NCBI GenBank assembly: GCA_943704425.1
Contig: CALSCP010002822.1
Coordinates: forward strand, 1-64,000
Origin: Ministeria vibrans ATCC 50519
Taxonomy: Eukaryota > Protista > Filasterea
Length of the DNA: 64,000 bases
Direction: 5' to 3'
Shown: piece by piece, positions 18,633 to 62,696 of the stretch
Layout of the letters: every line of letters starts with the position of its first letter
How positions within the stretch are numbered: the stretch's first letter is position 1
Notes under the pieces: model-generated
Seen by the model: the letters and a program-made list of their open reading frames with translations, nothing else
What the model was told of the DNA's origin: nothing
Database searches by the model: none
Program-made: the position numbers and the translations under genes

Positions 18633-24039
<5,407 letters not shown>

Positions 24040-28300: not shown

Positions 28301-28599
28301 CACAGCAGCGTGCGGCGCGTTTGCGAGGTGGCGATGCGACGCTGTTTCGCGACGCGCGTTCCTTCAAACGCCGGCAGTGCCTCGTTCTGCTGGGTAAAAG
28401 CCGCCAGCGCATGCGAGACCGGGCCGTCCGGGGCCCACTGGGCGTCGGCGAGGTGGACGACAAGGACGCCGCGGGCGCGCAACGAGGCATAGGCGCGCAG
28501 AAGCGGCGAAGAGGAATACGACGCGCTTTCGTCGTCATCAGGCACGATGAGCGACCAGATGGCGTGGTCCACGTCACGGACGAGGACCGATGTATTCAT
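24094..28599 (-). CDS. MED13: Mediator CDK8-module subunit MED13
   Basis: LLWRAAHNAVE...YLRLG, VQVEGITMRYP, SPLALRHWSQLKLGPYG...RLGEH, VTDAHGALME, WRVFIERVG, C-terminal LSWLT...RRSNLPLH. Confidence 0.85.
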
Positions 28600-36648: not shown

Positions 36649-37611
36649 ATGGCCGAAACGCGCACGCTGCTGCAGATGGGCGTGGTCCTTGTGGGCATGT
36701 GGATAGCATACCGCCTGGCGACAGACTCGCCGCCGCTGGCGACGACCGCAGCGCTCGTGTTTGGCGCCAAGCGCGATCCGTTGAACGTCGACCCCACTGT
36801 GACAAGCGCCGCTCTGTTGAGGATACAGCGGGAAAAGGACCAGCGCGAGTGCCTGCGCCGCATCGGCGAGGCGTACGACGAGGGGCTCATCCAGTGGCTC
36901 AACCTCCACGACGTCCCCATTGCGGTGCTGCCGCAGCAGCTGGCGCGTCTCGAAGAACTCGTGCGTCTGCACATTGGGCTGTTGCCTCCTCCAACGGAAT
37001 TCCCCGACAACGGCATCAACGACTCGCTTGGCCAGCTGGCGCGCCTTCGCGAGGTGCTTGTTCACAGTGAAATGCCTCTCACCACGGCAGCGGTGGATGC
37101 GTTCTTCTCGCTGCCCAGCATTCGTCGTCTGTCGTTTGTCGACAGTCGTCTCGTCGTCGATGACAACTACCAGGACGCATCGGGGTCGCAAGAACTCCCA
37201 CTCGCGCGCTCCCACGACATTCTCAGGCTGACGCGCACCAAGGGGGCCAAGCTTAAGCTGCTCGAGTTGCCGGCACCCTGTCGTGTCGTGGTCGCGCACA
37301 TCCACAAGGTCTTTTTGCGCGCACACGTCGCCGTCGTCGAGATTCTGCCGGGCCTGTCGCTCGCCCTACACGACCGCATTGTCCTTGAGCGCATCCAGCA
37401 CGAAGGACTCACGACTCACCGGTGGCAGAGCGACGAGTACCGTGTCGACTCCATTCGCACCGACGACCACGAACAGCTGTCGGTCGCCGAGGGTGTCGTT
37501 GCTGAGGGTGCGCCCGGCCTGCTTGTGTCCATTCCCATGCCCGAGAATGGTCGCAAGGGCGATCGCGTTGTGTGGGTTGGAGTCGATCGAATGGAGAAGA
37601 AGGCCAAATAA
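36649..37611 (+). CDS. intronless protein: N-terminal hydrophobic anchor, about 3 LRR-like units, C-terminal beta-barrel resembling the U32-peptidase C-terminal/EF-Tu domain II-like fold
   Basis: MGVVLVGMWIAYRL; WLNLHDVPIAVLPQQLARLEELVRLHI; VAVVEILPGLSLALHDRI...VDSIRTD...GLLVSIP...KGDRV. Confidence 0.6.
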   Translation: MAETRTLLQMGVVLVGMWIAYRLATDSPPLATTAALVFGAKRDPLNVDPTVTSAALLRIQREKDQRECLRRIGEAYDEGLIQWLNLHDVPIAVLPQQLARLEELVRLHIGLLPPPTEFPDNGINDSLGQLARLREVLVHSEMPLTTAAVDAFFSLPSIRRLSFVDSRLVVDDNYQDASGSQELPLARSHDILRLTRTKGAKLKLLELPAPCRVVVAHIHKVFLRAHVAVVEILPGLSLALHDRIVLERIQHEGLTTHRWQSDEYRVDSIRTDDHEQLSVAEGVVAEGAPGLLVSIPMPENGRKGDRVVWVGVDRMEKKAK

Positions 37612-38022
37612 ACATTATTAATAATTATTATTATTCGTTTTTTTTTTGTCATTTGTTTTGTATCGAATATAAGGAGTGTGATTAATTTTTATTCCGTTGT
37701 TTTCGTGATAGTTGACTGAAACTCATTTGAGAGATCATCACACATCAATGAGTGTTCGTAAGTAACTCACAACTCACAATGTACAATGAATACGTAACAC
37801 TGGTCACAAAAGTTTTGAGAATCGTCCTCGTTCATACTCGCATTTTGAATTTTGATTCTTCCTTTGTTTTCTTGATCAAGACTCGAGAGTCGACTATCAG
37901 TCGAGAGATCAACACACACTCATTTGTTCTTCATTTTCGTGTCATTTTAGATCAGCATAGCCAATGGATGTGAGTCCAACTCATAACTTAGCAGTGAATA
38001 GTTATCAGTTATCACAAATATT

Positions 38023-39118
38023 ATGAGAATCGCTCTCGTTCAAACCCGCGGAGTTGTTGGCGATGTGGATGGGAACATTGCGTTTGCCAAGGAACAGATC
38101 GAGAAGATAGTGCGGGAGGAAGGAAGTGCCGACGTTGTCGTGTTTCCCGAATTTTTCCTCACAGGGTACTTTCTCACCAAGGAACAGGTAGGGATCGGCG
38201 GGTAGACGATGAGCATGGGGCACTGCTCACGCACGGGGATGGCGGGTGGTGCATTTGGATAGGTCGCAGCACTCGCACAGGACCGGGAAAGGAGCATGGC
38301 CCTCAAACAGATGCATCGTCTGGCGGCCAGGCACAACGTCGCTCTGGTGTACGGCTACCCCGAGCGGGCAGTGCGCGATGGCGTCACAGTTGTGTACAAC
38401 TCGGCGCAGGTACGAGCAGCTCAGCGCGGAAATGATCATTTAACAATGATGACTGTTTATATTATAACTATAATTATTATAGCTTGTCTCCTCACACTGT
38501 TTTATAACTATTATGCACATATTATAGCTTGTCTCCTCACAAGGTCGTGTCTTGCTCAACTATCGAAAACAACACTTGTTTGGCGCGCACGAACGTGTGC
38601 TCTTTACGGAGGCACCCAACGAAGCACCCATGGATGCAATGTTGAACGAGGTAACCGAATGTGGGAACAAACGACAGTCATTCAAAAGAGCTGTGCATTA
38701 TGATACATAGGTCAAAGTGACGCTTGGCATTTGTTACGACATTGAGTTTCCTGAATTTGCGCGTCTCTGTGCCCTGCGACAAGTCAAAATACTGTTTGTA
38801 CCGACGGCATCGTTTTCGGAGTGCGTTCCGCAACTGATTGTGCCCACACGCGCAATTGAGAACCACTTGATGATTGTCTACTGCAACCGATGCGGAAAAG
38901 ACACGCCGACGAGCAAGGCTTTCTGTGGTCTCAGCTGCATTGTGGACGGTTCCGGCGAAGTGCTTGTGCAGTGTTCGGGGGACGATACAACAGCTGTGCG
39001 TGTGCGCGACTGTGAGTGGGACAGTGCGCAATGCGTCGAAGCGGAGCAGTTCAATCCGTACTTGACGGACCGACGACCGGAGCTGTATCAAATGTTGCAC
39101 AATTGTAATGTAGACTAA
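38023..39118 (+). CDS. carbon-nitrogen hydrolase (nitrilase superfamily amidase)
   Basis: MRIALVQ, VVFPEFFLTGY (Glu), YRKQHLFG (Lys), GICYDIEFPE (Cys), PTRAIEN. Confidence 0.92.
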
Positions 39119-39189
39119 AATAATATTAGTATGATGGGTTTCAATTGCAAAGTTGTAATGTAGAAAAATAACTATTATTATGATGTGTT

Positions 39190-40515
39190 TCAATTGCTAT
39201 CATACAGATACTTGGGAAGGTCAATGGCGACGGAGCGAGCGACCGGTAAGACACGCTCGTACGGGGCATTGCAGCGGAAGCGCACGCCGTCCAGTTGGCC
39301 CGTGTGCGCACTGGTGCGGGTCAGAAGTTGGAGCGAGACTAGGTTGGAAATCTGAAAGGAAGGAGAAAAAAATGATTAGAGTGGGACAGTATGGCATGAG
39401 AGTGTATGGTGGTGTGTGAGGCTGTCAAGGAAAAATGCTTGAATGAGAATGAAAGACTTGAGAGAATGAATGGATCAAATAAGAGTGAGTAAAAGAAAGA
39501 GTAAGGGAGAGAGAAAGGGTGTCATTTAGAGTGCGTAGCCGCAAAAATGAGAGTGAACAAATGAGTTACATTGAGTGAAACGTAGAGTGAGAGTGAGCAA
39601 AATCATTCAACTTCTTCTTTTTTACCTGAACATAAATATCAGACGACGTTTGCACTTTGTCATTGAGAAGACTATAAAAAATGGCCAACAGCCGATCAAG
39701 AGGAAACGTCGCTGGTCCCATTTTCTTCGGATCAATCTAAATAAAATAATTATTACAATAAAATAATAATAATAATAATAATAATTATAATTATTATTGA
39801 CATTCATTCGTGTAAAAATGTTTTTTTTGTACCTGATCTTTCTTTTGCTTTGCACGCGATTTCTTTCCGCTCGACGACACATTGGCATTGACGGTAAACA
39901 CCTGTACGTCTGACTTTGCGGGATTGTACGATGCAAGAAACGCCGCAATGAGAAGGTATTTGGCGTAGAAGGGCAGTTCAAGTTCGGTTTTGGTGAGGGA
40001 CACACTCGTTTTGAGGTGTGTTGTGTCTTCTTCCTCTTCTTCTTCTCCTTCCTCCCCATCTTCTTCTATTGCTTCGGTTTCAGTGGCTGTACTTGATTTG
40101 TCCTTTTGTGGCTGTTGTTGTTGCGTGATGAGAATCTGACTGTCGAGATCGGCCGCACTGACTTCGCGCAGGTAAATGCGCGGGAGAATGGAGCGCAAAA
40201 TGGGACTGACATGAACGTAAAGCGCACGCGGGTCGGAGCGGTCGCACTTGCCCGCGAGCACAGGCGCAATGTAGCGCGGGAAGAGCAGTGCAGCAAGATA
40301 GCGCAGTTCGTTGAGGTCGTTGCAGGCGACGTTGAAGACGTCAAGCAGCAATTGTGTGTAGTGCGCAAAAAAGAGGGGTTCTTCGCTGGCAGGACATTCC
40401 GTGCGCACTACAATCGCTTTGATTTCCTCTTCGCTGTACGACGGAAAGTGCACGAGCACTGGATCGGTGGAACCAGTTGCTTTGCTAAAAGGAACAGAAG
40501 AAAATTTTGTTGAGA

Positions 40516-40549
<34 letters not shown>

Positions 40550-41487
40550 TATATATATACAAATATATATACTCTCTCCTCTCTCTCATTCTGTTTTACC
40601 CAAACTTGTCCCAGACAATGTCACTGATAAAGATGGAAGCAATGTTGCACTGTTGAGTGAGTTCGCGAAGACGCAGAATCACCGCTAAAAGAGTGGCGGG
40701 GAAACGAGAGTCGCGCAAGCGGTTGGCCCTGTCAAAGACAAGGAAGACGGGCGTCGTCGGTTGCCGGTCGTCCCGCTCGTCCATGGGTGCACGATCACCA
40801 TCGTTGTGAGTGGTGGATAAAGTGTTATGATCGCATGTCTAAAAAGTGCAGCGTACAAAACAGCATAGTCAGAGAGAGGGAGAGAGAAAGGAGAAAGGTA
40901 CAAGTGATAGAAACAAAAGCAAGTGACAGAAACAAGTGATGGAAACAAAAAGAAATGATAGAAACAAGTGAAAAAAACCAAGTAAGTGAAACAAGGGAGT
41001 AAAACAAGTGAGCCAAACACGTGATAGAGGCGAGGCGTACCGTTTTGAGGTGACGGACAAAGTCATTGATGTTTTCACACCTGACCCACGGCCGAAATTC
41101 ATTGTCCTAGCGAAGCCAATCGAGGGGTAAGACAAAACATGGGATGTGTGGGTGGGTGGAGTGCAGAGGGGGCCGGTACCGGGGACGAAATGTGGCCATT
41201 GAGCTGATTGAGAATCGATTCAAAGACTGTGCGCGTTGACAGGGCGTCGATGCAGTTGATCCAGGCGACGCGTTGCTGTCCCTGGAGCAGTCCTTTGACA
41301 ACCTCCGTCTTTCCAGTGGCTGTGTGACCATAGACAAACACGCTGTTGGGCGGCGACTGCAGCGGGAAGGCAAGGGTCAGGAGAAATCGATGGCATTGAG
41401 TGTTTTGGTGTGTACGCCGTTGAGGAGAAGTCTTCTCAGCGTATCGATTTGCTTTCGTCTTTCGGGAAAGGTCTCTTCCAATGACAT
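39190..41487 (-). CDS. ORC5: origin recognition complex subunit 5
   Basis: MSLEETFPERRKQIDTL, FVYGHTATGKT, LVFDRANRLR, HFPSYS, LPFYAKYLLIAAFLASYNP, GPATFPLDRLLAIF. Confidence 0.95.
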
Positions 41488-41813
41488 TGTCACGCAGGAA
41501 CCCAAGTGGTGAGGAGGAGGCTGGACGTGATGGTAGAGAAAAAGAGAGAAGGGAAAGAGATAAGAGTAAGAGAGTAATCATTTCACTCAGTTGTCGAAGT
41601 GAATGTAACTCTTGTGACTTCAACATGAAAATTATATTGACCCCATTCACAAAACCATGGAGGTACAATCAGATACTGAGATGTCCTCAGGCTGTATTGC
41701 GCAGAAAGTAACAAGGTAATGGGCTCAGCGTTTGCTTTGTACCTCCCAATTCGTTTGTTGATATCCATTCCCAATGAGAAAACTTTAAAGATAACATATT
41801 TGTTTTCATTTCG

Positions 41814-44800
41814 ATGGCCGCATCTCTCAAAGGTAAGAAAATCTTCTCCATGGGACGCTAGCACGAGCGGTCTTCTTTGGTTCTTTTGTTCCTTGCGCGA
41901 AATCCTTTTTTTTTCTCCCCTTTGCGTGTAAAAGAGCGACTATATCTCCCTGTTGGTCGTCACAATCATTCCCCAGAACCAGTGTAATGCCGTTTCCTTT
42001 GCGATAAAGAAGCTTACGCTGTCCTTTGTTATATTAACTTTGTGTTTTTTTTTTTCGTTGATGTGTTTCAGAGATTGATGGGCTGCAACGGTCGTACCGC
42101 CAGGGTCTCATCCTTGCTCGGTGCGACTACAGCGACCTTGTCGACCCATTCACTGCGAATACAGCGTCGCCGCAGCTGTACTTTGGCCATTTGCCGGGTG
42201 CGTTGATTGCCGCTCGAAACACTGCCGTTGGGATGCTCCAAAACGGATACGATATTGTCTCCGTGCTCGCCGACAAGCGCCTTACACCAGACGGATCGGT
42301 GCCGTTTGGCAATGATCAGTCGTTCTTTGGCGAGAAGCCGACCGGGTTGACGCCGGAGGAGGAGGCGGAGGAGACGGCCCGTGCTACGTTTGCTGCTGAC
42401 TCCATCAACAGCGGCCGCTTGCTGTGGGTCGTTGCACCCAAGCTTCCTCGTGCCGACATTGCCGCGTGCATTGACACGCTTGAAAAGATGAAGCCAAAGG
42501 TCAACGGCCAGGTTAAGGGCCCTGCCGGCCCCAAAACCGAGCTGACTGTTTGTCTTATCGGTCACGGTGTTATGAACGAGGAGGGAGACTATGCGGTCGC
42601 CTTCAACCATATCCGTCTTGTACCTCGCAATGTGGGCGTGCGTGTTTTTGATGGCTACACCTTGGCACAGCTGCTCGACGATCTGACGCTCAAGACGCGC
42701 TGGAAGCATCTTCTCATCATCGCCGACACCTGCACCGCTGGTACCGCACTCACCAAGGACTCCTACGTGCCAGACAAGGCAGAGATGTTCCTTGATGATG
42801 TGTGGACTCTTGCGTACCACACACCGTCGTACCAGTTTATTGGATCATCGCTGAACGGCACGCAAGGACTTGCTCTGTTGCCTTGGCAGGGAACAGTGTT
42901 CTCAATGGCAATGGATCGAGTGCTTTGGCACTCGAACCCAACTGCCTTTCAAAACCCTGGCGGTACAACGCTCTACAACTGGGCGACAGTGGGACATGTT
43001 GGCGAGAGACTGCGCGAGAGCATGAATGCCATCATGGAGGAGTTCTTTCCCACCGACACCGACCTGGCTCCAACGTGTCTCCATGGCCGTCTCGACCTCG
43101 TTCACTGCAACGTGACACAACCCAATGAGGGACACTTTCTTTTTGTGCGTCATGGCGCACCAGCGAAGTGGACTCGTGGAGACATTACTCAGTCACCTTA
43201 TCATGTAAGCAAATCAAGACCCCTCAACATTTTTTTAAAAATTTCTATATTTGATTTATTTTCTAGCGAACGCCCACTTCCGCAACCTCCATTGCTACAA
43301 CACCGCATCCATTGACACAACCGACCAATTCTGCCACTCTCTCGCGCATTCCTCTCTCTGAAACCCTTTCTATTCTCAACCACGACTGGTCTCGACACAT
43401 CCTCATTGTTGTGCCTCAACTCGACTCACTGCGTCCCGACATCCTCGCTGCTCACCGCTGTGGCCTTGACGAGCCCTTTGCTCCCTTTCAAGAATGGGTT
43501 GGCTCAGATGATTACTACTGCTACAGCCTCTATTGTCATACACTCGCGATCTCACTCACATTCATTCTCATTGTGCGCGCCCCATCGCCCGATTCTTGCG
43601 TTGCTCGTCTCGCGCTCCTCTGGCAACCCGACCTGGTTGAGTTTTACCCTGTGGAGACCGGAGAGAAGCTTCCGAACCGCGTGGTTGTTGTGCGCAATCT
43701 CATCACCAACCCACCTCAATCTACTGCGTCTCATTTGCCTCCGAGTGCCTTCAGGAGGCAGCGCCTCTCGCTTGGTGAGACCACTCAACGTCTGGGCGAT
43801 CTGTCACTCCCATCTGCCCTCAGTTCTCTGCGCGTACAACCTACCACACCCGACGACACAACTGTCCGCATCAATGCTTTTCAGGACATGGGCTCTTGCT
43901 CGTGTGGCTGCTGTGCACGCTGCGGCATCCGCCGAGTAGTGATCCTCACCACCTCTGCTGTGAGCTTGACTGCTGCGGAGCGCGTTGACCTGCTCTACGC
44001 CTGCGCAGCTGCCTCTTCTCGCCTGCTGCCTGTTGACAAGCTCACGCAATCTATTTCCTGTTCCAAAACGGTTCGCTTTGAGGCCCTTTTTCGCGATTTG
44101 TGCTCTGAAAGGCTCGCAAAGGAGCGCGACCTACTGCTGCTCGCTCTGCGCGACACACTGTGGTGCAATTCATGTCCGAGCCAAGACATCAGTGCTCTTT
44201 TTCGCTTGCACCATCACCGTCCTGGCGCAGACAACTCCCTCCAGCTCCACTTTGAGGCCCCACCATCATTGCTCTGGTCTTTACTCTCATCCTCAACTTC
44301 CAACAGCAAACTTGTCGATCTTGGCTTTGACCATGTGTGTGAGCCCACACCGACATTGTACCTCTCTGTTGCACTGCGAACTCGCGACGCAACCGTCACC
44401 AAACCTCTCTCACAGGACACAATGAATGGCATTGTCGACTCAGTCGTCTCCTACGTCCAGTCAGAAATATTCCCTACTCGCGGCTTTCTCCCTCGCCTAC
44501 ATATCTCCACCGCCGCTCAGACCATGTGGGTTGTGCTGAAGCTACCCGAAGACGTTACTTGCGAAGAATACTGTATTCTTGGCGGACTTCTCATGACGAA
44601 TGTACCTCCGGTCATTCAAGAGCGTGCCGTAACAAGTATACGGATTGTGTACGAGGGAGAAGATGAGCATGTGCGGTTGCTGGCGGAGCAGCTTTCAAAG
44701 CACGCCCAATCTCTTCCCGATTCTCGAGCACATGCACATGCTTTCCTGCGAAAAGCCTGGGAGGTGTACACTTTGGACGACGAAACTGTGCGCCGCGTTG

Positions 44801-47800
44801 CGCTTATCGATGCACTTCGATTTGACCTTGTGGCCACAGTCAAAGTGCTCGCATTACACATGGAGAACGACTGCCGTCTCATTGATGTCGTGACTCACAA
44901 CGGTGACGGCGCTGCCGCTATTGCTGCGCGACATAGTGCGACAACGACTCTTGCTTGGCTGCTCAGCAGTGAATGTGGGGTGCGTTGGGATGTTCAACAG
45001 CTTTTTGAGGCGGCCTTTGATGGGGACTCGGAGAGTGTTGTTGAGTTTCTGTACGACCAGTGTGGGCTTGGTCGTGTCTTGACGAGCGACACTGTGAAGG
45101 ATTTGGTGGGTCGTAAGAAGTTTACCGTTGCTGCGTGGGTCTGTACCAAGCTCAAGTTGGAGCTGACTGACTTTGCTGTGGCGACGCTCGAGTCAGTGAT
45201 GGACGCCACTCTTGCTGCTCATCGTTGGTCCGACTGGCACGCAGTGCTTGCGCAGCAGTACCTCAAGAAGGCCACGGGCTTGGCGAGGGCCAAAGCGCTC
45301 GAACACGCGAAAGAGGCACTGCAGTTTGCCTTTGACGATCAACGTCGTGTGGTTGCGTTGCGCGTAATGGCTGAGCTTGAAAAATGGGAGGAGATTGTGT
45401 CTGCTGTGCGTCAAGTAATCCGTCACGTTCACGACCGTGAGATTGTACTCATGTTTGCTTGTGCTCTGTACTGGTCTGGTCAAGGGGATTCAGCGTTGTC
45501 ATATTTGTGTCGCCTTCTCACCACTCCTGCTGTCGTTGACGACGTGGACTCGGTCGAGCCAGGCGATGTATCAAGTGTGCTTTCGCTTGTGTTGATTGGC
45601 CGTGCTGTCAAGATTGGCAGCATTCCCGTGAATATGGAAGTGTTTTCGCAAGTGTTGTCGACTCTCAAGGTTCTGCCTGAGTCTTTTGCTCGTGATTGTT
45701 TGAGCTGGTTGAGTGGCCATTTGGAATCTGACCTGTCGTGGCTTGCGTGGGTACGCTCAGAGCGAATTGCCTTCTTAGCGTCCATCCGCGGATCGGATGC
45801 CGATTTCACTGCTCCGCAACTTGAGTGTGTAGAGCCTGATTCGGACTTGTGGTTGCCTCATCGGCGCGTACAACTTCGTGAACTCTCGGCTCGGTTCTGT
45901 GAACTATCGGCTCGATTGGGCATGCAGCAAACCGAAGACCATGCTCAGTTTATTGCTACGCTTGTCGAACCCATGCCATCGCCGGATTGTCTAGCAAAGA
46001 TCAGTCAACTTCAGGTTCTTGATCTGTCGGGTGCCCTTGCGTCTAGTGGCGTCTTACCGGTGTGTTTGGTGGACGGCAGCCTCACGTTGCAAGTGAAAAT
46101 TTTGATCCTGAGTAACAACGAGCTGGTGGTCCTGCCTGCGAAGCTGTTTCTTTCCTCAAAACAGCTTTTGCGTTTCATCGCCGATGACAACAAGCTTAAG
46201 TGTTTGCCCTCGTCCATTGCGTGCTGTTCCGACCTTGTGACACTATCTGTGGCAAACAATCGTCTTTTCACATTGCCTGAGTCTCTGTCCAAGCTCAGGT
46301 GTTTGCGTGAAGTCAACTTGAGTGGAAATGAGCCACTTCTTTCTCTCGCACGTTTGCCCAATTTGCGCGTACTTTCTCACCTAGCCGAGTCGCTTCAGAT
46401 TCTGGATATGCACGTGGAAGGTGCACCAAGGGTACCTATGCAAGACCCAAGACTGTGGTGTGCAGAGCAGGCATGCACTACTCGCTTGACTCTAAGTCGA
46501 TTCGCAGAAGGTTGGGAAGAGTGTTACTCCATATCACCATGCTAATAATTTATTGAATTTTAGACGTATACCAAGCGGCCATGTTGGATCAATCGCCTTC
46601 TGCCTCCTCTGGCGTGACTGTGATTGTCGGAGGCGAGCCGGCCGCTGGCAAGACAACTTTCTTCCGTGGCATGCTTTGCAAGACATTTGTGCCTGTGCAT
46701 CGCAAGACATGGTATGCGACCGTGTCGTACTGCGACCCGCTGTTGGAGGAAGCGGCGTATGTTGATGAGGAAGACTCTCTTGCGACCACGTCGCTGATTG
46801 AGCGCTCGGCGATTCCCGGCTCCAAAGACACGTCGTGGGAGACGTCTGCGATGAGTCGAAAGATTCATGAGATAACTGTCAATCGAATCTCCAAGGAATT
46901 TGAAGTGACTGCTAGTGTGCGGTCTAGTGTGACAGAAGCAAGTGCGGCCTTGCAAGTTGAATCTCGCGAGAGATCATCGGAAAACGATCCATTGAGTTTG
47001 ATGACCATTGACACACCAAGCGGAAGCGACTTTGATGTTGGCCCCTCCACCTTTGGTGGGGCCGGTGGAACTGGCTCGGGAGCGTCAAGTCGTCTCCCAC
47101 CACTGCAGCCGCCCATTGTTCCTACGACCGCTTCTACCGATGCACCAAGCGTTGAAGTCAAGACGAGCACGGTGCAAGCAGACGTCTGTCAAGTTGTAGC
47201 GAGTTCTCGCCATGCTGTGCTCCCTCGCATTGCCTTCGTTGACCTCGGTGGCCACAGGGAGTTCCGTGTGGTGCAGTCCATTGTCCCTTTTGCGTCGTCG
47301 CTCTATGTTGTCGTGGTTGATTTGGAGAAGATGCGCATGTCGCCAGGGGAGGTCAGATTGGAGGAGTGGCTGACCCTTTCGGCAGTGAAGCAGGCGCGAA
47401 CAGTGATGATAGTTGGCACTCGTGCGAGCACGAGTGGCTACAAAGATTTTGACTTTGAAGCTGAGGCTGCTGGCAGTGATTCGTTTGAGGGCGTGCAAGA
47501 GTCTGTGCGTGAGGTACTGGAGCGACTTGGGCTGCAGTGGTGGGGTGACAAGCCAGTTTGGCCTGTGGACTACGCTACGGATCTCCGCGTTGACGAGCTG
47601 CGTGTGGAGGTGTTGCGTGCCGCCAAAGATGTTGGTGAACAGGTGCGATCGTCTACCCAGATGGCAGTGGCGATGGATGCTGTGCGTACATGTGCAGGTG
47701 GTGGTGCGTTGAGTGTGACCAAGGATGAGGTGCAGCAGTGTCTGGCATCACATCGAGTTCTCTTTCATGAGTATGTGTACGAGGCAAAGCGTGTTGGTGC

Positions 47801-50800
47801 TGCTTTTGTCGATGCTCGACTGCCTGAGCATGTTTTTGTGGATGTGCCGTGGTTGGTGAACGCTGTGGGTTGCATGTACAGCACTGTGCTGGAGAAGGAA
47901 GTGAAGGAAGAGGAGGTTGGAGCGGCGATTTTGCATGATTTGGAGGTGTTACGCGAGCGCGGGGTGTGGACAGAGGCGTTGGTGGATTGGGCGTTGTCGC
48001 AGACTTGTTTTGACGACGCATCATCGTTGAAGCTGCTGCTTCTGCGATGCATGGAACCTCTTCCAACTGAAAAAGTTCATGCTATGGCACCGTCTCCTCC
48101 AGAGGTTTGTGTTGGTCGTGAAGAGCAGATTGAGAAAATTCGACAGATGAAGAGCGACCGTGTCATTGCGTTGCGGGGACGAGGTGGAATGGGTGCGAGT
48201 ACACTCGCTGCACTGTATGCCGCTAAACACGCGTCGCTGTATCACTCTGTCTTGTGGGTCCGTGCCATGACTGCAACATCCATCGCTGCTTCGTTCCGTG
48301 CCTTCGTTGAGTATACATCTCTTGTTGGGGTCAACTTGACGACGACAACTGATGCTGAAATTGCGCGCGTTGTAAACGATTGGCTCTCGCGCTCATGTGG
48401 CTGGTTGATGGTGATGGATGGGTGCGATGACCTGGCGCTGTTGAGGAAGAGCATGCTGGGAATCAGCCCGTTTGGTGGAAGATTGGTTGTTGTATCATCG
48501 AGGCTGTCGAATGAACTGTCTGCCGAAATGCTTGGAATGGAAGTGGAGCTGGTGGAAGTGAAGGAATTTGATCTTCAGAAGGGAGTGGAGTTGATGAAGA
48601 ACCGACTGGAAGCCCGGTCTGGCGAAGAAGAGGAGTTGAAGAAGATTGTTGGGCTACTGGGAGGCATGCCGTTGGCAGTGGAACTGGCAACCGGATATTT
48701 GTCAACTGTGACACATATGAGTGGTGCGGAGTACCACGCTCAACTGTATTCTGTGCTTCGAGAGCGGCCTGGAGAGGACGAGTGGAACTCCCGCCTTGTT
48801 TCCTCTTTTTTGCCGTGTCTGTTTTGGGTATTGGAGTCGAGAGCGACGAAGGTGATGGTGAAGAAGATATTGAGTGTGATGGCGTTCTTGGAAACCAGTT
48901 TGGTGGATGTGTCGCTGTTGCGTGCGCTTGTGATGAGGAGGTGTGTGGAAGATGGCACTAATGCATTGGATCAATTTCAGTCTGCTCTTGAGAAGCTTTG
49001 GCGTGTTGCCATCATCTCTCGGCTGAACGAAGAGTTTATCTCAATGCATGCTTTGGTCCGAGATATGTGTCGGATTCTGATGTTTGATGATGCAGAGCAG
49101 AGGTGGGATTTTCTCAAAACAATGGGATTTTCGATTCTCGGAGAGTTGCGTGTCCTTGAAAACGAACTTTCTCCTGATAATATGGACCAGAATCGTCGTT
49201 TGGGCGAGCAAGGAATGGCGATTTTTGAGTGGTCGTGTGATGAACTAGTTGCGCTGCGGCGAAGGAATGCATCGGGGAGCGCATCAGGGGATGAAGAGCA
49301 CATCGTCTCGCTCGGAATGTCTCTTCACCGGATGTGGAGTGTGACTGGGAATGCATCACGTTCACGCGAGTGCAGATCTATGTTGGATACTCTTGATATT
49401 AGACCGTATGTATCAGACAAAATTTCACCGTGACTTTTTTTGATTGATTTCGTCCTTTTTTTTTTAGGACGAGGGCGTTTCGATCTGCTTTTTATGCAAC
49501 ACTGGAACGGGGCTTTGTAGAGACGCGCTCAATCAAACTGATGTGCTTTGGAAGTACGGGAGCAGGAAAATCGTCACTTCTTTGTGCCTTGCGCGGACTG
49601 CCACTGCCACAGATGAGAGATCGTTCCGTGGCCATCCAAATGCAGCGAGTGCGAATGGTCGATCACGCACACTTGAGGGTCTTTGAGGCAGTGCCACAGG
49701 AGGAGTTTCGCATTGCCAGTCTCATTGGTCCGCCTCGTGAAGAAGGAGACGTGCATCAGGAACCTGCGCGGGGTGCGCCAGCTGCTGGTGAAGCAGAGGC
49801 GACCCACTCAATGTCTGAGCCAATTTCACCGACTACCGCTCAGACAGCTACTCCAAGCTTTGAGACGTGGTTTAAGAAGGCCGCTGATGGTCTCTCGACC
49901 CCCTCAGAGCGCGTCTTTCGCCCACGCGCGTCTGTCCGTCCTATATCACAGGTATTTTTGGAACCGACCCTTTCTGCGCCATCTGGTTCGATGGCTTTCA
50001 CCCCTGCTTTAGCAGCAGCAGTGTGCGCTTTGCTCGAGTCTGAGTTGCAGGAAGATCGGGTTGAACTTGAGGCATTTGACTTTGCTGGTACTTTCAACAG
50101 AGCACAGCACAAGACAAGCACAATATTCATAATGTTTCTTTATATAGGCGATGAGATGTTCAACTTGCTCCCTACGCTCTTTATGGGATCCGAGTCCGCC
50201 TACATCCTCGTCTTTGACCTGTCCGTCATGAACGACGCCACACAAGCACAGCGGCAGTACGAGCACCTGTCCAAGTGGGCTTACCTGATTGCGCACCAAG
50301 TGCCGGAGACGCTCTCGTCGTACTTCCGTGTGCTCATTGTGGGTACCCATCTCGACACGTTCCCCGACGACACTGCGCCGTCCTTGCTGCTGCGCACTGT
50401 CTCGAAAGAGATTGATCGCGTTGTGGGACCGGTGTTGGGCAACCACTTAATTCTGCCTGGGTCTGGTCGCACTTCGTTCTTCCAAGTGGGCAGCGCAAAG
50501 GGCATTGGCCTGCGCGAGCTCAGCGAGGGGATTCATGCTGCAGTGCGTCGTCGGCGATTGCCACTGGAGTATGTCTGTGCACAGGATCTGGTTGGTCGAT
50601 GGTCGCGGATGGGCCGCATTGAGCTGCTGTCGTCTGTCGCTGATCTGCCGAGTGTCGTTTTGAGTGAGACCACACCGGTCATCACAGTCGGGTCGCTGGT
50701 CCCCGACGAGCACGCACTGCGCACAGGACTGGTGCCATACCTTGAGGAGGCTGCTGATGTGTTGGTGTGTCGTGAGGACTCGAGTGCGCGAGGCGTGAGT

Positions 50801-52675
50801 ACTTCGGACACAATTGTGTTTGATGTGCCACGTTTGATTGCGGCTGTTGAGTTGTTGTGCTCGGTGGTGATGGCACAGTGGAAGCGGGCGACGAGTGATC
50901 GCGCGCTTGACATGCTTGATCTGGTGAAGGCAGCAGGACGGCGACTGGACAACAAGAAGACGTTGAAGCTGTTTGCGGAGCTGGACGAGGCACGCCATTT
51001 CTCGGAAGAGGGATTCCCTGTTGACGTTGCGTTGTGGCTCGTGTGGACTGCGGCGGCGCGTGAGGCGAAGGGTGAGCCGCTTTTGGCTGGTGCGGACATC
51101 TCAGACGGGCCGTCGCTCTTTTCGGCGCTTGAGCGACTGAGTCTTGTGTTCCAACACTACACTCGTCTGCTCGTGCCGATGCTTCTGCCTGAACATGCAC
51201 CGTTTGTTGAGAAAGCGACAGCCGCACCAGTACAGGTAATGCTGTACCAGGTGATGAAAGACGAAGAGGACACGCGCTCCGTGCTTCCCGTGTCACTGGC
51301 GACCTTCCATCTGGTTGTGGTGGCGCTGTGGCGCGAGACGATGAATGTGTGTGCGATCCGAGCGACTCAGCGATGCACGGATGTGCTTGTGATGGACAGG
51401 TGTGCTCCGGTGCGAGTGCGTCTCAATGCGGGTGAGGATTTCATCCGTGTGGAGGTGTTTGACGATGGGGGACCACCTGAGCGAGTAGTGGCGACGTTGC
51501 ATCGGGTGAGCACGGGAGTGTGTGACCAGACGCGGAGTCTGCGGTGGGGATGGCGCGGTGTGCCTGTGCTTGTGCCCGCGAGTCCAACGAAACCATCACT
51601 GCCTCTGTTCCGACCATTGGAGGTGGCTGCGTCACCCGAGGTGTACCGTGAAGAAGGGACGCTGGGTGCGGTGCTGCACAGCAAGGAACCGCGGGTGTGC
51701 AACGAGAAGCTTGAAGAGTGGTGGACCAAACGAGTCGGTAAGTGGCGACGAAGAGACAACATAATCCATATTTTGTCTTGTCTTCTCTCATTATTGTCAA
51801 TTACTCGTGTATTATATTTAGGTGTCACAATGTCGCGGCGGTACGTTCACGTAGCGGCATTAATTGTGGGTGTGAGTCGCTACGATTCGACAACGAATCC
51901 TCAATTGGCGGCCTTCCCTGATTTGCCTGGAGTGCGTTGGAGTGTGAGCGCACTTGCAAAGCTGTGGAAGGGACGCGGCTTTAGCGTGCAAAGTGTGACG
52001 GACACGAACACATGCGACCAAGTGACGGGGGTGGAGATTGGGGCAGCTGCACGTCGATTGGCGCGAGATGTGGGAGATGGAGTAGGTCGAGATGCGCTGC
52101 TGATTGTGCACTTGCTGGGCCACGGGGCGGAGGACAGTCAAGGTGGTCTGCTGCTGAGTGATGCCAGCTCCTCACTCAACGGTGGCCAAACGCGATTCAA
52201 CCTTGATGCGCTCAAGGGTCTGCTTTCGGCTGAGATGGGTTGGCTTGGTTGCAATATTCTGGTTGTGTGTGATTTCTGCTGGTCGGGTGCGCTGCTCAAG
52301 GCGGAGCACGACCTGGCATTTGCGAGCCCAGTCGCTCAGTATGGGTACTCGCGCCAGCTGCTTGCCAGCTCATTGGCGGACACGAACAGTTACATGTCAC
52401 ACAAGCAAGTGCCATTGACCCAACCTGATGGAACTGTGGAGATGGTCTCCAAGTACACTCGTCTGACTGAGTTGCTACTGCGCGCGCTAGGACCAACAAC
52501 ACTGGAGGCGTTTTGCGACGGTGAAGAGCACATCACTGCGTTGGGACTACGGCAGAGACTGCGGGAGATGGACACGGCGAACACGTGCCAAGCGATGATG
52601 GTGGGGCGCATTTGGGACGATTGGCGGGGCACGCGCAACGACGGAGACATTTTGTTGTATAGGGATGGGAAGTGA
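41814..52675 (+). CDS. giant ~3,433-aa protein: caspase-like(C14)-ankyrin/TPR-like-LRR-Roc-COR-NB-ARC-Roc-COR-caspase-like(C14)
   Basis: exons 41814-41832, 42072-43204, 43267-46510, 46564-49405, 49468-50087, 50148-51737 and 51822-52675 sum to 10,302 nt (divisible by 3) and every GT-AG junction keeps frame; motifs IGHG/ADTC, LRR LILSNNELVVLP, GEPAAGKTT, DLGG, GRGGMGAST, WLMVMDG, GGMPLA, MHALV, GSTGAGKSS, DFAG, VGTHLD, LGHG/CDFC. Confidence 0.85.
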
Positions 52676-55206: not shown

Positions 55207-57738
55207 ATGTCCGACTCGGTTGCTCTCGTCCATGCCACCATACGCCTGTTGAGAAACGCCACGGACCCCACGAGCTTCGTTGCGGCGCTCAGACAGGCCA
55301 AGAGCCTTTCCCTTCCGATTTCGTCGTGCACTGCATCGTTTCGTCGTGCCAGCCAAGCGCTGGTGGACGCTGCTCTTGCGTGTGCCGCCCATCGCCAGGA
55401 CGATCCTGCACTGCTGGCGTCTCTTCTGGAGACGGCGGCGTGCTCTCCGCTTGACCTTATCGCGTCACTCTCAAACGCGTTGCGATCCTTTTCGCGTCGC
55501 GCCTCCCTGCTCGACAGCGCGCCCTCCGACCGCGTCGCCGAGGACTCGGAGCCACCCGAGACCGAAGGCGGTCGTCTCACTGCGGCCGAGTACCAGACAG
55601 CCGTTGATTTTGTGTGTGCTCGACTGGCCACTCTCGTCTTGTCGGACGAGCGCTTCTCGTCGGCCATTGACGACGCACTCTCGTCGCCGTCCATCATTCT
55701 CGCCGTCCCCGATCGTGTCTCCAATGCCATTGGGCCTCGACGTCGCCTTCCCGCCGTCCTGACCCCCTCGCGCTTCTTTGCGCGTGTCGTCGACTGTCTG
55801 CTCAACACTGGCAACAGCCAAACCATCACGACTGGCGAGTGGCTGTCGCACTTGTGTTGTCGTGGAGAGTCACACGCCGTAGTTGAAGCACTCGCAGCGA
55901 GACCCTCGCCAGATATTGTGGCGGTCCTCTCTGACGACGCTCTCGAACCCTTTCTTGTCACACTGCTACGCCACCTTCAGAACACACCTGACGCCTCTGA
56001 GGTCACCTCTTTCCTGTTGGCCAAACTGATGGCACGCACAGAGCCTCCCGCAACCCACGCACGTTTCTTGCTCGTGGACAAACTGGCCACGGCGCGCGTA
56101 CACACCGTGGACGCACTGCTCTTGCTATGTGACACCCTCATTGCACTCGAGCTCACAGACGAGACGGTGCAGCGACTCTTTGCTGTGTGGTCCGACGCTC
56201 TCTTTGTGCGCCACACCCCGTCAGATCGTCATTTGTGTGCCACTCAGCTCTTGGTGGCCCTCGTCGGACGCGTGCCCAAGAAGGTACGGCAGGTACACGA
56301 GAGCGACTGGATGCTTGCCTCGGTGGGCGGCATCCAGACTCACTTGGCGTGTCCTCTTGCCGACCGTCGTACCATTGGCATGTACGCCGCTCAGCACTTG
56401 TCACGTTTGCTCTCTCCGCCCAACATTGCACCACTCTCCTTTGACCTATCACCCTCGCACGATCCTATTACACGCGTTCTTGAGCCTCGTCATGTCACCC
56501 AAACCCCCACACATGCGCCTGCTCCTTCTTCTACTCCTGCTCCTGCTCCTGCACCTGTCTCATCCACGCCCGGCATTGACCCTGGCATGGCCACCGACAG
56601 CGACGATGACGAAGATGCCGACCTCATTGGCTATGCTATCCCCACGACGGAGCCACAGCATCCGGCGACCACGAGCAGCGGCGAGCCCAGTGTTGACACC
56701 GCACGCACCTCGGCCGCCTACCGTCGCTTTCACTATGCCCGTGACTGTCTTGATGCTTTCACCGCTATGGACCAGGATGGCTCTGAGGAGGCCGCCAACC
56801 TGCCAGCTCGTCACGAAGGCGCTCTTGACGCTCTGCCGCGCATCTGTCGGCAGTCACCGGCTGATCTCGCTGACGGAGTGGGTTCTCAATTGCTGCGCGC
56901 ACTACTTTTCCTTGAAAACCGATTTGATCTTGCCCAGTTTCAATCGAGGCGCATCGATGCCATGTCAGCCGTTGCCTGTGCTGTGCCTGCACAGGCCACA
57001 GAGTACCTTCCGTCGACATTTTACGAGCGCAACCTCTCGCTCTATCAGCGAGCTGATGTGCTCGTAGTCATTGCACGACTCGCGCAGCGTCTTGGAGCAC
57101 CACCAGCACCGGCCACAGGCAAACCTGACGCACGCATTCAATCGCTGCCACAACAAGAGGAGAAAGACACCGACGAAGAGGACTTGCCACCCGCCGAGGT
57201 AATCCGACGACGCGTCGCGGCCAAGACGCGTCGCTTCAACCGAGGCACTGTGTCGTCCGCTCCCGAAGCGTCTGCGAATCGTCTTGTGCCGTATGCGCCG
57301 CGATTGTTTTTCACACTAATCAATGGTGTCTATGACACCCCTGTGCACGCGCTTGACTTCTCCAGCAACCGCAGTACAGTCGATCTGCTCCAGAGCGAAA
57401 CAGCTCTGTTGGCACAGCTCATCCGCACAGCGACCACCGTGCTGCACAGTGTACTCGGACAACTATGCGCCATTCCCATGGCACGCGCCGCCATTGCCTT
57501 TGTCTGGGCCCTTGTGCGCACTGTCGCGCAGCCCATTGTTTGGCGCATGGTGCTCTTTCTCATCTCTAACGCAGCCACAGCAGGTCCTCCCGAACTGCTC
57601 ACAGACGATCCCAGCAAACGCTGCGAATGGTCTGACTTGCGTGCGTGGGCTGCCGAGTCCTGTCTCGACTGTGGCGACGAACAGTGTCGCGAGTTGGCTG
57701 TCATTGCCATTCAGCTCATTGACGGACTCGGAGTGTAA
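55207..57738 (+). CDS. TELO2: TEL2/TELO2 (TTT complex PIKK chaperone), intronless, 843 aa
   Basis: GIQTHL...RRTIGMYAAQHLS, DSDDD motif followed by LIGY, YARDCL, LLFLENRF...F..RR, LSLYQR, KTRRF, NRL..YAPRLF. Confidence 0.88.
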   Translation: MSDSVALVHATIRLLRNATDPTSFVAALRQAKSLSLPISSCTASFRRASQALVDAALACAAHRQDDPALLASLLETAACSPLDLIASLSNALRSFSRRASLLDSAPSDRVAEDSEPPETEGGRLTAAEYQTAVDFVCARLATLVLSDERFSSAIDDALSSPSIILAVPDRVSNAIGPRRRLPAVLTPSRFFARVVDCLLNTGNSQTITTGEWLSHLCCRGESHAVVEALAARPSPDIVAVLSDDALEPFLVTLLRHLQNTPDASEVTSFLLAKLMARTEPPATHARFLLVDKLATARVHTVDALLLLCDTLIALELTDETVQRLFAVWSDALFVRHTPSDRHLCATQLLVALVGRVPKKVRQVHESDWMLASVGGIQTHLACPLADRRTIGMYAAQHLSRLLSPPNIAPLSFDLSPSHDPITRVLEPRHVTQTPTHAPAPSSTPAPAPAPVSSTPGIDPGMATDSDDDEDADLIGYAIPTTEPQHPATTSSGEPSVDTARTSAAYRRFHYARDCLDAFTAMDQDGSEEAANLPARHEGALDALPRICRQSPADLADGVGSQLLRALLFLENRFDLAQFQSRRIDAMSAVACAVPAQATEYLPSTFYERNLSLYQRADVLVVIARLAQRLGAPPAPATGKPDARIQSLPQQEEKDTDEEDLPPAEVIRRRVAAKTRRFNRGTVSSAPEASANRLVPYAPRLFFTLINGVYDTPVHALDFSSNRSTVDLLQSETALLAQLIRTATTVLHSVLGQLCAIPMARAAIAFVWALVRTVAQPIVWRMVLFLISNAATAGPPELLTDDPSKRCEWSDLRAWAAESCLDCGDEQCRELAVIAIQLIDGLGV

Positions 57739-57832
57739 TTTTATNNNNNNNNNNNNNNNNNNNNNNNNNNNNNNNNNNNNNNNNNNNNNNNNNNNNNNNN
57801 NNNNNNNNNNNNNNNNNNNNNNNNNNNNNNNN

Positions 57833-60805
57833 CCGCGCGCCCACTCGACGTGCGAGCCCGACAGTCCGCCCTTCTCGACGACCTGCACTTCGGCGAGACT
57901 GTGGACTGTACTCGCGTTGAGCAGACGCGTGTTGCCCAGAGCACCTCCGTCGCAAAGTGTCGCGTACACTCGCGCTAGCGCTCGTGCCGAAAAGTGACCA
58001 TTGGCACTGGGTACACTCGCCTGACGCATCTTCTTCATGTTGAACATGCACGGATCCATGATGCCCATGCCACCACTTGAGTCGCCTCCCGGAGTGTCAC
58101 CCGACAAGAGCGCATCCGCATCCTCCATGAGACCCCCATCGCCCGAAGACGCACCACTCTGCTGCGTCTTCTTCTCCTCCTCCTCCTTGTCCTTTTGACG
58201 GTTCTGCTCGCGAAGCTGCGCAATGGCCTTTTGGATTTGAGCACGATCAAAGCCCCCGTCAAAAAACCCGTTGCACAAACTCGCGACACGCTCCATAGCT
58301 TCGTCGGGCACACAACCCATGTACAGTTCCTGCTCGACACCAAGCGGCACCGCAACAACCTCGCGCACTAGCTCGGCAATGCTCTTGCCTGCAACCCTTT
58401 GCACAAGCTCGCCGACCAAGAAGCCCCACGAGAGGTAGTGGTAGCGCGCAAGGTCCCCAGGCGCATGTGCCGGCGCACTTGTCTCCATCTTCTTCCGCAT
58501 CACATCCCAGTCCATGAGCTCTTCAATGGGCGTGCGAGGTGTCACGGCACCCGCCAGACCCGCCTGGTGCGACAGCACATGGTCCACGGTGGTAAGCCCT
58601 TTGCGCGAGAGCGCCGCCGCATCGCAGCCCGTCACAAATTCGGGCCAGACATCGGATACTCGCTGACCATAGGCAAGCAGACCGCGTTCAACGCACCAGT
58701 GAAGCGCAACAGCAGCAACCGCCTTGGTGCATGAAAAGGCATTCATGATTGAATCACTACGCACGGGTCGAGCGTCCACCGCACTCATCGTGCCACCCGC
58801 GACGTCCACCAGGCACGCTCCATTGTGGTAGACACACACTTGAACACCCACAAGCGCATCTTGACCATAGAGATCACACACAAGCTCGCACACGCGCGAC
58901 TCAAGTATGGAGCGTCGGGGTACACTGGTGTCGCCATAGACAATGTTGCGCGAATGCAGCTCGCGCGGAATCGACGTTACAAGTGCGGTGCGAGCAAACG
59001 GCACGAGACACTTCATCCACGACAGTTCCACACCCAGAGATGAACTAGAAGAAGAAGAAAAAAGAAACAAGGAGCGACAAACGCGAGTGAGTGAAAAATG
59101 TGGAGAGAAAAAAGAAAATAACAAAGCGAGACGAGAGAACAAAACAAAAGACGAAATGAATGAACAAAAAGAATGAGACCAACAAAAATTAATAAACATA
59201 ATACAAAGTGAAAAAGAAAATAATGCAACAAAGCAAGAGAACAAAACAAAAGACGAAATGAATGAACAAAAATAATGTGACAACAAAAATTAATAAACGT
59301 CATAATAAAAAGTGAAAAAGAAAGAATGCAACAAAGCAAGAGAACAAAACAAAAGACGAAATGAATGAACAAAAAGAATGAGACAACAAAAATTAAACAT
59401 AATAAAAAGAAAAAGAGAAGAATGTAACAAAGCGAGAGAACAAAAAAAAAACGAACAAAAAATAAGACATACCAGAGGCCGCGAAGGAGAAAGGTAGTGC
59501 GAAAGAAGAAGATGAGTTCGGTGGGAAATGCTTCAATGGGATTCCTCAGCTTCTTTGGAAGCTTTGAACGTTGCTCACGACGCAATTTGGACAGTTCCAT
59601 AAACTCTTTGCGAGCGACTTCACGAGGAGCAGTGTCGCGCAACGAGAAGCGAATCTGCTCCATATCCTCTTTAGCATTGTCACGCTTGAACTAAGAAAGA
59701 TGCAATGTATGAGTTGGACAGTCTGTAGGTATGCATTATGGTACTTTGAGGCCCATTTCGTCAAAGGCCTGCAACAGACCCGCATAGTCCATTTTGGCTG
59801 CGCTAAAGAGCATTCGCGCAAACGCCAGTCGAATGCGCTCATCAATCTTCTTTGTGAGTCCAAAATCAAGCAGAATTGGAATGGCCTCACCATTCTCCAC
59901 TCGAATCACTACAGAGAAGTCCTATGAGAACCAACAGAACAACACCACTCTGCTATGGCTTTTACAGATATTTCCCGGGTGCGGATCGGCATTGAAAAGG
60001 CCGTCGACAAACACCTGATGGCCCATCACACGACACAATGCCTGCAATAATGCCTTGCGCGACACTCCATGCTTTTCCAACTCCTCTACATCCGTCACTT
60101 TGAATCCCTAATACAATACTCAGTACAAAAGCACAAAATCCTTTGTTTTGTTACCTCTTCAAATGTCATGACAAGCACTCGGCGCGTGACCAAGTCAGGC
60201 AGCACATCGGGCAGGCGCACACGAAGACCCGCGCGCTTCATATTCTGCGCCACCTGCGTCATATTCTTTGCCTCGTGTACAAAATCAAGCTCCTTGATAG
60301 CCTCCACTGCCCACGCATCAATGACCGGCTGGAAGTTGAGTGTGGGATCGAGCCAAGCGACCCACGACGTAATCAGCGACAGATTCACCATATCCTGTGC
60401 CATAATCGCCTCAACTCCCTTGTGCTGCACCTTCACTGCCACCTATATATAGAACAAGTGTGAGAACAAACCAAAGTGGGAAGAACAAAAACGAGAAAAA
60501 AAAGAAGGTGAAAGAGAGAAATGTGAAAGCAAGCAATACCTTTCGGCCATCAAAGAGATGCGCAACATGCACCTGTCCAATGCTCGCCGCACCAACAGGC
60601 GTCTCGTCAAAGGTCGCAAAGAGTGCTTCAAGAGGGCGACCTAGTTCACTGACAATCATGGCGCGGATACTCGCCATGTCCGTGCTGGGACATTCGTCCT
60701 GTACTTTGGTCAGTTCCGAAGTCCATTCCTCCGGCATCACATCAGATCGACTGCTCATGTACTGGCCAACCTACCTCCCAAAATATATAAAAACAAAATG
60801 AATGA

Positions 60806-62373: not shown

Positions 62374-62696
62374 GGCGAGCAAAATTAGTGAATAATAATT
62401 ATTCTCATAATAATTAATATTCACGGAAGATTCTGAAGACAAGAGGTGAAGCAAGTTGTATACTGATGAAGTCAGAGCAGAGGGAGAGTGGGAGAGACTC
62501 ACCGAGAGAGGCACACATAGAGAGAGAGAGGAGGGGAAGCGTGAAGAGCTCGAGCGACACAATCTGTCATAAGTGTCATCACATAACACATTGTCACAAG
62601 TCACAAGTCACAAGACATATTTTTATTATAATTTTTCTTCTGTATACCGGAGAGGCCTTGCTCGCACCCCCCCTCCTCCCCCCCCCAAACACCAAG

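Follow-up and report, generated by a model that had tools for sequence, protein, structure and literature searches.

Structure of the Locus and Gene Model

The window analysed here, i.e., the whole stretch of 64,000 nucleotides (nt) at positions 1 to 64,000 of contig CALSCP010002822.1 of the filasterean Ministeria vibrans ATCC 50519 (assembly GCA_943704425.1), harbors at 42072-52675 a locus encoding two caspase-like proteases, two Roc-type GTPase domains and an NB-ARC domain, with the appearance of an unusual, chimeric gene for an immune or cell-death receptor. In the preliminary description of this DNA, the region was taken as one protein. It is not one open reading frame (ORF), being made up of four consecutive plus-strand ORFs in three frames, so that a single chain requires six introns; with these, the single-chain reading is retained, and 42072-52675, together with an upstream exon, seems to form a single spliced gene of seven exons and about 3,433 amino acids (aa). 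The exons of this model amount to 10,302 nt, i.e., 3,433 codons plus a stop codon, and are in frame with no internal stops, exons and split codons having been checked singly. The features of the gene (coordinates of the window) are the following, the two protease types being referred to as N-type and C-type and the two G domains as Roc1 and Roc2.

42191-43315, plus strand: first ORF of the gene (from the ORF list)
43312-46545, plus strand: second ORF (from the ORF list)
46581-49433, plus strand: third ORF (from the ORF list)
49541-52675, plus strand: fourth ORF (from the ORF list)
41814-41832, plus strand: putative exon 1, 19 nt with the ATG, 6 codons and 1 nt, then the donor GTAAGA
42072-43204, plus strand: exon 2, N-type caspase-like (clan CD) protease domain
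43267-46510, plus strand: exon 3, about 880 largely helical residues without assigned domain, then leucine-rich repeats (LRRs, ~45913-46440)
46564-48080, plus strand: exon 4, first half, Roc1 G domain followed by a COR-A-sized segment of about 150 aa
48078-49405, plus strand: exon 4, second half, NB-ARC and winged-helix/DUF7779 region
49468-50087, plus strand: exon 5, first half of Roc2, with P-loop, insertion of about 150 aa, and DFAG at the exon end
50088-50147, plus strand: intron, 60 nt, in-frame, inside the switch II region of Roc2, with GTACTT...TATAG ends and low GC content
50148-51737, plus strand: exon 6, second half of Roc2 and full COR (COR-A plus COR-B, ~50552-51736)
51738-51821, plus strand: intron, 84 nt, in-frame, between COR and C-type protease, with GTAAGT...TTTAG ends and low GC content
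51822-52675, plus strand: exon 7, C-type caspase-like protease, the stop codon lying 5 residues past the last strand

The predicted chain therefore reads, from its amino terminus, N-type protease, about 880 residues, LRRs, Roc1 with a COR-A-sized stub, NB-ARC, Roc2 with a full COR, and C-type protease.

All the introns have GT-AG ends and are 53-84 nt long, except for the first one (239 nt). Short GT..AG segments with a T-rich tract are found at the ORF junctions (43205-43266, 46511-46563 and 49406-49467; 53-62 nt). The last two introns have lengths that are multiples of three and are read through without a stop; for this reason, an ORF-based annotation runs through both of them, and 51738-51821, if translated, would place a spurious hydrophobic helix (ILSCLLSLLSI) between COR and protease. 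The paralogs retrieved from the assembly (29.7 Mb in 2,860 contigs) bear on both sites: their matches break at 50088-50147, and their COR and protease, which flank 51738-51821 in the window gene, occupy separate ORFs.

The most important junction, that between NB-ARC and Roc2, corresponds to a phase-2 intron (49406-49467). The frame of exon 5 is open only from 49448, and no ATG precedes the block AF..A..RG.V..SIKL, which is conserved in the paralogs; in these, a phase-2 intron lies within two codons of the same place and joins the same exon to upstream exons; finally, a GTATGT donor in the matching phase is located 62 nt upstream. On the basis of these three observations, the NB-ARC exon was joined to the Roc2 exon. 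At the 5' end, position 42072 is directly 3' of an acceptor site and the frame of exon 1 joins that of exon 2 through the split codon GAG; a search of 37000-42071 disclosed no further 5' exons conserved with paralogs.

The Two Terminal Proteases

The catalytic dyad that had been noticed in both terminal proteases is indeed kept. In the N-type domain, the histidine lies in CLIGHG (42551-42568) and the cysteine in IADTCTAG (42719-42742), and in the C-type domain they lie in HLLGHG (52109-52126) and VCDFCWSG (52265-52288), respectively; the HG and D-x-C motifs are invariant in eight N-type and eight C-type paralogs and are mutually aligned by hhalign, with the His after strand beta3 and the Cys after beta4 in both domains. 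The block-by-block correspondence previously drawn between the two proteases is also confirmed, every one of its blocks being taken in by the hhalign alignment of the two domain families (probability 97.9%, E 5.2e-13, 238 columns); a plain BLASTP search of the N against the C domain gave 27% identity over 114 aa (E 0.029). On the basis of the profile alignment and of the invariant His and Cys in both families, the two proteases are homologous and both are probably catalytic. They are both caspase-like, as the expression "twin caspase domains" implied, but they are not recent duplicates, sharing about 22% identity and falling into two separate clades with 100% support in a quick tree. On this placement, an internal duplication as the origin of both proteases was rejected.

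The N-type domain, which has a helix-strand insertion after beta2, gave no Pfam match, and its profile retrieved nothing useful among the PDB sequences. An AlphaFold2 (AF2) model built on eight paralogs (mean predicted local distance difference test (pLDDT) score 66, predicted template modelling score 0.77) was matched by Foldseek, with probability 1.0, to MALT1, metacaspases and caspases, and by VIA-align (Z 15-17, 205-236 residues) to legumain, GPI8, MALT1, caspase-6/7/8 and metacaspases; the caspase-8:cFLIP complex 3h11 is also among its structural matches. The caspase/legumain/MALT1 fold spans residues 7-366 of the model, which places the N-type domain, as modelled, within the caspase/hemoglobinase alpha-beta fold of clan CD, with caspase, paracaspase, metacaspase and legumain not separable from one another (Z 14.7-16.8). 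The C-type domain marginally passes the cut-off of Pfam Peptidase_C14 (PF00656; 21.8 bits vs. 21.4), the C-type domain of the paralog C2175 reaching 27 bits, and its profile weakly matches metacaspase-4 (E 0.033).

N-type and C-type domains are found together in three architectures of this genome. Besides the window gene, the locus C1441:52415-57751 (minus strand) starts with an N-type domain whose dyad is intact (Pfam C14 3.4e-5), separated by some 230 unassigned residues from a single Roc-COR, after which comes a C-type domain; LRR and NB-ARC are absent. The third architecture (C2175:42995-44925) is a stand-alone tandem of about 620 aa composed of an N-type-like domain with an intact dyad, one intron, and a C-type domain in which the catalytic Cys position is occupied by Gly (CDCGNGG). 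The quick tree groups the domains of C1441 with those of C2175, for the N and the C type alike, and sets them in other subclades than the domains of the window gene, so that the union of the two types arose at least twice. In relatives with two proteases, an intact domain is often accompanied by a dead one: in C837 (L039:283-1236) and C1075 (L045:256-1200), the internal caspase-like domain that follows Roc1 carries, respectively, a Cys-to-Ser change and both HG-to-AS and Cys-to-Ser changes, and the N-terminal caspase-like domains of both keep their catalytic residues.

The DNA directly upstream of the C1441 gene (L044:6524-8895, about 2.3 kb) is open in every one of the six frames and is presumably a stop-free repeat. 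A CFAP65/hydin-like gene, which marks the genome as that of a eukaryote possessing flagellar genes, is located just upstream of the C2175 tandem.

The GTPase Domains, the NB-ARC and the LRRs

Two Roc-COR units had been described on either side of the NB-ARC. Two Roc-type G domains do flank it, but only Roc2 is followed by a full COR. Roc2 exhibits the P-loop GSTGAGKS (49550-49573), the DFAG motif and the G4 motif VGTHLD (50339-50356). The AF2 model of Roc2-COR (mean pLDDT 78.6) was matched by Foldseek, with probability 1.0, to LRRK1, LRRK2, the C. tepidum Roco, 3dpt, 3dpu and 6hlu; residues 135-529 of the model superpose on COR residues 626-940 of C. tepidum (VIA-align Z 13.7, 279 residues), and the fold match to the Roc domain of LRRK2 has a Z of 9.1, the profile alignment with the same domain being weak (E 0.3-1). 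According to the model, Roc2 is predicted to be a canonical Roc with a full COR (COR-A plus COR-B) directly after it.

Roc1 shows the P-loop GGEPAAGKT (46629-46655), the motif DLGGH (47241-47255) and a degenerate G4, VGTRAS (47412-47429): the tetrapeptide is TRAS here, THAS in two Roc1 paralogs and THLD in Roc2, the base-specifying Asp being lost. Its score against Pfam Roc (22.8 bits) is below the threshold of 27, its profile has no match among the PDB sequences, and its nearest ESM Atlas clusters are of the Roc/COR-A kind (score 0.95). Roc1 and Roc2 were aligned by hhalign over 108 columns, restricted to the G domain (probability 53%, E 1.3e-4), and a BLASTP comparison of Roc1 and its stub with Roc2-COR gave no real alignment, the segments after the two G domains having no detectable similarity; the two Roc units, too, are not duplicates. 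About 150 residues separate the end of the Roc1 G domain from the first residue aligning with the NB-ARC of the paralogs, and a full COR takes about 330 residues in C. tepidum. Since only this COR-A-sized segment precedes the NB-ARC, Roc1 probably lacks COR-B, i.e., the dimerising half, judging by lengths and boundaries. Both Roc domains contain a low-complexity insertion between the P-loop region and DxxG (about 170 aa in Roc1, window 46700-47200, and about 150 aa in Roc2, 49620-50050), because of which both stay below the Pfam Roc threshold; this long post-P-loop insertion, common to the two, suggests a shared lineage.

The NB-ARC between the two G domains scores 34.5 bits (1.7e-8) against Pfam PF00931, whose cut-off is 23.5, and is accompanied by DUF7779. 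In its Walker A motif, GRGGMGAST (48177-48203), the Lys is replaced by Ala and six residues are deleted, whereas the Lys is kept in all six paralogs compared (GGVGKST, or GGLGKST in one of them); the Walker B motif LMVMDGCDD (48405-48431) is retained. No TPR array follows the NB-ARC of the window gene, Roc2 being found there instead, whereas the four paralogous NB-ARC ORFs that were scanned all run on into TPR arrays. The LRRs ahead of Roc1 were recognized by Pfam LRR_8 and by matches to SHOC-2/LRRD1-type LRRs of the PDB (E 1e-22, residues 883-1058). Exon 3, in which they lie, has paralogs only in C1075 (72%) and C837 (45%).

Paralogous Families and Probable Chimeric Origin of the Gene

The modules of the gene belong to large, fast-evolving and receptor-like families of the same genome, where at least 61 C-type protease, 77 Roc2-COR and 48 N-type matches were counted (the last from a profile search that includes weak C-type matches). 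The typical N-type gene is organized as caspase-NB-ARC-TPR (about 20 genes) and the typical C-type gene as sensor-Roc-COR-caspase (about 40 genes), with WD40 or LRR fragments upstream of two of the Roc-COR-caspase copies. The closest relatives of the front half are C1075, which contains a caspase, an unassigned region, LRRs, Roc1 and a dead caspase-like domain without any Roc2 module, and C837, in which the same series continues with NB-ARC and TPR. The window contains the only locus of the genome where an NB-ARC adjoins a Roc2. Its NB-ARC exon ends at the point where the TPR arrays of the paralogs begin, and its back half is 90-96% identical, at the nucleotide level, to several Roc-COR-caspase copies starting from exon 6 (match from 50135 onward), a stretch of high identity over exons 6-7 that looks like a gene-conversion tract. 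Since the similarities of the modules start or stop at exon and domain borders, the gene looks like a chimera of the caspase-NB-ARC-TPR and sensor-Roc-COR-caspase families, assembled at those borders.

A chimera produced by the assembly was also considered and ruled out: the repeat-like tract begins only at exon 6, and both the NB-ARC-Roc2 junction and exon 5 are unique sequence.

Other members of the N-type subclade, on C334, C2457 and C2854, run into unassigned sequence and contain no Roc, NB-ARC or C-type domain. At C2647:79288-79822 (minus strand), a fragment of 50 N-type residues (66% identical, with one stop) directly adjoins a COR fragment (66% identical), the two being probably what is left, after decay, of another chimera of this kind. 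A Roc-COR-caspase paralog on C1049 carries, just 5' of its first Roc exon (L036:4230-4650, minus strand), a tandem array of four to five units, each about 60 nt long, resembling a complete short intron (GTAAGA...CTTAG) and spaced by 3 nt.

In the literature, no report was found of a single protein that combines two caspase-like domains with an NB-ARC and two Roc units; publications on Roc-COR with caspase and NB-ARC, on two Roc domains and on tandem caspase domains were searched, and the architecture of the window gene was not found among them. Taken singly, the parts are familiar (clan CD proteases, NB-ARC STAND proteins and Roco GTPases), and it is their combination that is unreported in the literature found.

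Neighbouring Genes

The window contains other ORFs, which encode a PIF1-like helicase domain (6964-9615), hydrolase and protein kinase domains (20817-22922), a product of 1,029 aa with no Pfam match (25510-28599, minus strand), a Tel2-type telomere regulator domain (55207-57738), a beta-lactamase-like domain (57463-59286, minus strand) and a FYVE domain (60844-62604, minus strand).

Proposed Mechanism and Alternative Explanations

As for the identity and the general logic of the gene, the favored reading, to which we assign a probability of roughly 0.7, is that of a chimeric two-protease, two-GTPase, receptor-like gene with proximity-activated proteases. According to it, the LRRs and the N-terminal region would act as the sensor, and Roc2-COR would be the only canonical nucleotide switch; Roc1, with its degenerate G4 and probably no COR-B, and the NB-ARC, devoid of the Walker A lysine, would serve mainly as scaffold. 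The output would consist in a proximity-induced activation of the caspase-like domains: dimerisation of Roc2-COR through COR-B would bring together the C-type proteases, which directly follow COR-B, the simplest version of this being common to the whole family, its single-protease members included. The N-type protease, no longer next to the NB-ARC that usually adjoins it, may become active on pairing with the C-type one, in cis or in trans.

Several points weigh against this reading. The gene model is drawn from the sequence and its splicing is predicted, exon 1 being a guess and the weakest part of it; one scan of metagenome contigs for exact matches to a 30-nt pattern, taken where exon 4 ends, gave none, and thus no transcript-like contig. 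The assignment of Roc1 is based on motifs, a sub-threshold Pfam score, a weak hhalign alignment and language-model neighbours, and that of the C-type domain as caspase-like comes from sequence comparison. The loss of the Walker A lysine could indicate a chimera that is starting to decay. The ratio of nonsynonymous to synonymous substitutions (dN/dS), which is 0.20-0.33 for every module against its paralogs, speaks for the favored reading, but it is a pairwise value that does not isolate the gene's own lineage. A HMMER scan of 1.84 billion representative proteins gave 28 matches, nearly all of them short ORF fragments, and not a single named relative; two of these matches were traced, and both came from one metagenome project, SCHR19-1, as did the one match of a protein search with the N domain. 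A word-indexed protein search with exons 5-7 gave no match; it carries little weight, since longer proteins were excluded by a length filter. Lastly, we infer the modes of sensing, switching and protease activation.

Among the alternatives, it is possible, if unlikely, that the N- and C-type proteases of one chain pack edge to edge as a caspase-like pseudo-dimer, gated by the Roco/NB-ARC scaffold and without any pairing of COR domains. The co-occurrence of the two types in three architectures and the at least two origins of their union speak for it; the pairs of intact and dead domains in C837, C1075 and C2175 recall caspase-8:cFLIP, and both domains of the window gene end at or near their last strand. 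However, domain shuffling is rampant in this genome and only 3 of about 60 genes combine the two types, so that their co-occurrence could be due to chance; about 40 genes have a C-type and about 20 an N-type protease alone, and the support values come from the quick tree. A stricter form of this idea, in which the N- and C-type domains are an obligate heterodimeric pair (an intramolecular pseudo-dimer) packaged either as a bare tandem, or around one Roco, or around a Roco-NB-ARC-Roco core, with the state of the GTPase holding the proteases apart or closed, is a rather unlikely proposal. An intermolecular COR-B homodimer joining two C-type proteases, as in the favored reading, explains the approximately 40 single-protease members equally well or better.

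It might also be supposed that the locus arose by a recent recombination between two multigene families, is non-functional or decaying, and has stayed open for no other reason than its youth. The Walker A motif with its lost lysine and 6-aa deletion, the degenerate G4 of Roc1, the gene-conversion tract over exons 6-7 and the presence elsewhere of pseudogene fragments of related chimeras, such as that on C2647, would fit this explanation. Nevertheless, about 10.3 kb of exons contain no stops or frameshifts, the protease dyads and the Roc2 motifs are intact, and every module has the dN/dS values given above; moreover, the THAS/TRAS state is common to the Roc1 clade, so that the degeneracy of G4 is old and tolerated. 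Overall, this explanation appears improbable.

A further explanation is that of two neighbouring genes, one encoding caspase, LRRs, Roc1 and NB-ARC and ending at the TGA at 49431-49433, the other being a separate Roc2-COR-caspase gene. In addition to the predicted nature of the splicing, this explanation draws on the absence of Roc2 in C1075, the closest front-half paralog, on the otherwise independent existence of about 40 Roc2-COR-caspase genes, and on the ATG at 49541, which opens the fourth ORF. It is nevertheless very improbable: just 34 nt separate the stop codon from the acceptor, protein conservation begins as much as 24 codons before that ATG, in a frame that offers no second start, and the phase-matched GTATGT donor and the phase-2 intron through which the paralogs splice the same exon to upstream exons both speak against it.

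Finally, the mechanism advanced in the preliminary description, i.e., an intrachain, nucleotide-dependent pairing of the two Roc-COR units through COR, by which the terminal proteases are brought together, is very improbable: two Roc-type G domains do flank the NB-ARC, their shared insertion suggests one lineage, and COR-mediated dimerisation of Roco proteins is established (Gotthardt 2008, as cited in PMC7159879), but the pairing of COR1 with COR2 is not supported, because Roc1 probably has no COR-B, its stub leaving no room for one, and has a degenerate G4, because the regions after the G domains are not detectably related and because C1441 reaches the twin-protease layout with one Roc-COR; in addition, the C. 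tepidum Roco, the one Roco protein whose cycle has been solved, is driven by GTP to monomerise and is monomeric in its active GTP state (PMC11052575).

Comparison with Known Systems

The window gene resembles the Roco proteins (LRRK1/LRRK2 and that of C. tepidum) in that its LRRs directly precede a Roc, in the THLD-type G4 of Roc2, as in LRRK2, and in the fold of its Roc2-COR, which superposes on the C. tepidum COR and is matched by LRRK1/2 in fold searches. It differs from them in that the output is a caspase-like protease rather than a kinase, in that two Roc units, both with insertions of 150-170 aa, are present in one chain with an NB-ARC between them, and in that Roc1 probably lacks COR-B and has lost the Asp of G4.

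With the caspase-NB-ARC-TPR (STAND) paralogs, the gene shares an NB-ARC that is 35-39% identical, the same winged-helix region, and an N-type protease of the same family as their N-terminal effector. Unlike them, it has neither the Walker A lysine nor the TPR sensor, a Roco-caspase module having replaced the repeats, and its protease lies about 1,600 residues (sensor plus Roc1) away from the NB-ARC. Exons 5-7, for their part, are a member of the sensor-Roc-COR-caspase family, with up to 96% nucleotide identity to some copies and common intron positions; in this case, the differences consist in the absence of a WD40 sensor, in the splicing of the module to an NB-ARC exon, and in the presence of a second protease type at the far N-terminus.

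An active caspase fold paired with a second one, in trans or in one chain, is known from the caspase-8:cFLIP heterodimer, from separase and from gingipain. The window gene differs from these in that about 3,000 residues lie between its two domains and neither has lost its dyad.

Regarding the wider occurrence of such modules, GTPase-COR units occur in bacterial conflict systems of the AP-GTPase-COR kind (PMC7159879), and in brown algae the ROCO and NB-ARC-TPR repertoires are described as expanded, with exon shuffling among families of candidate immune receptors (PMC11378527).

Significance

The normal switch of caspase-type proteases is a multi-subunit platform made with STAND ATPases. In the genome of M. 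vibrans, dozens of genes instead connect caspase-like proteases to LRRK2-type GTPases, and the window gene goes furthest, its predicted chain combining a disabled NLR core with two GTPases and two proteases. The obligate pairing of the N- and C-type domains, if true, would offer a one-chain alternative to platforms of the apoptosome or inflammasome type. The exon-level shuffling between two receptor families bears on the diversification of immune-like repertoires in protists. If it is expressed and active, the gene would allow testing whether a Roco GTPase can drive an immune or cell-death receptor in place of an NLR ATPase, and whether two caspase-fold domains can be regulated within one polypeptide.

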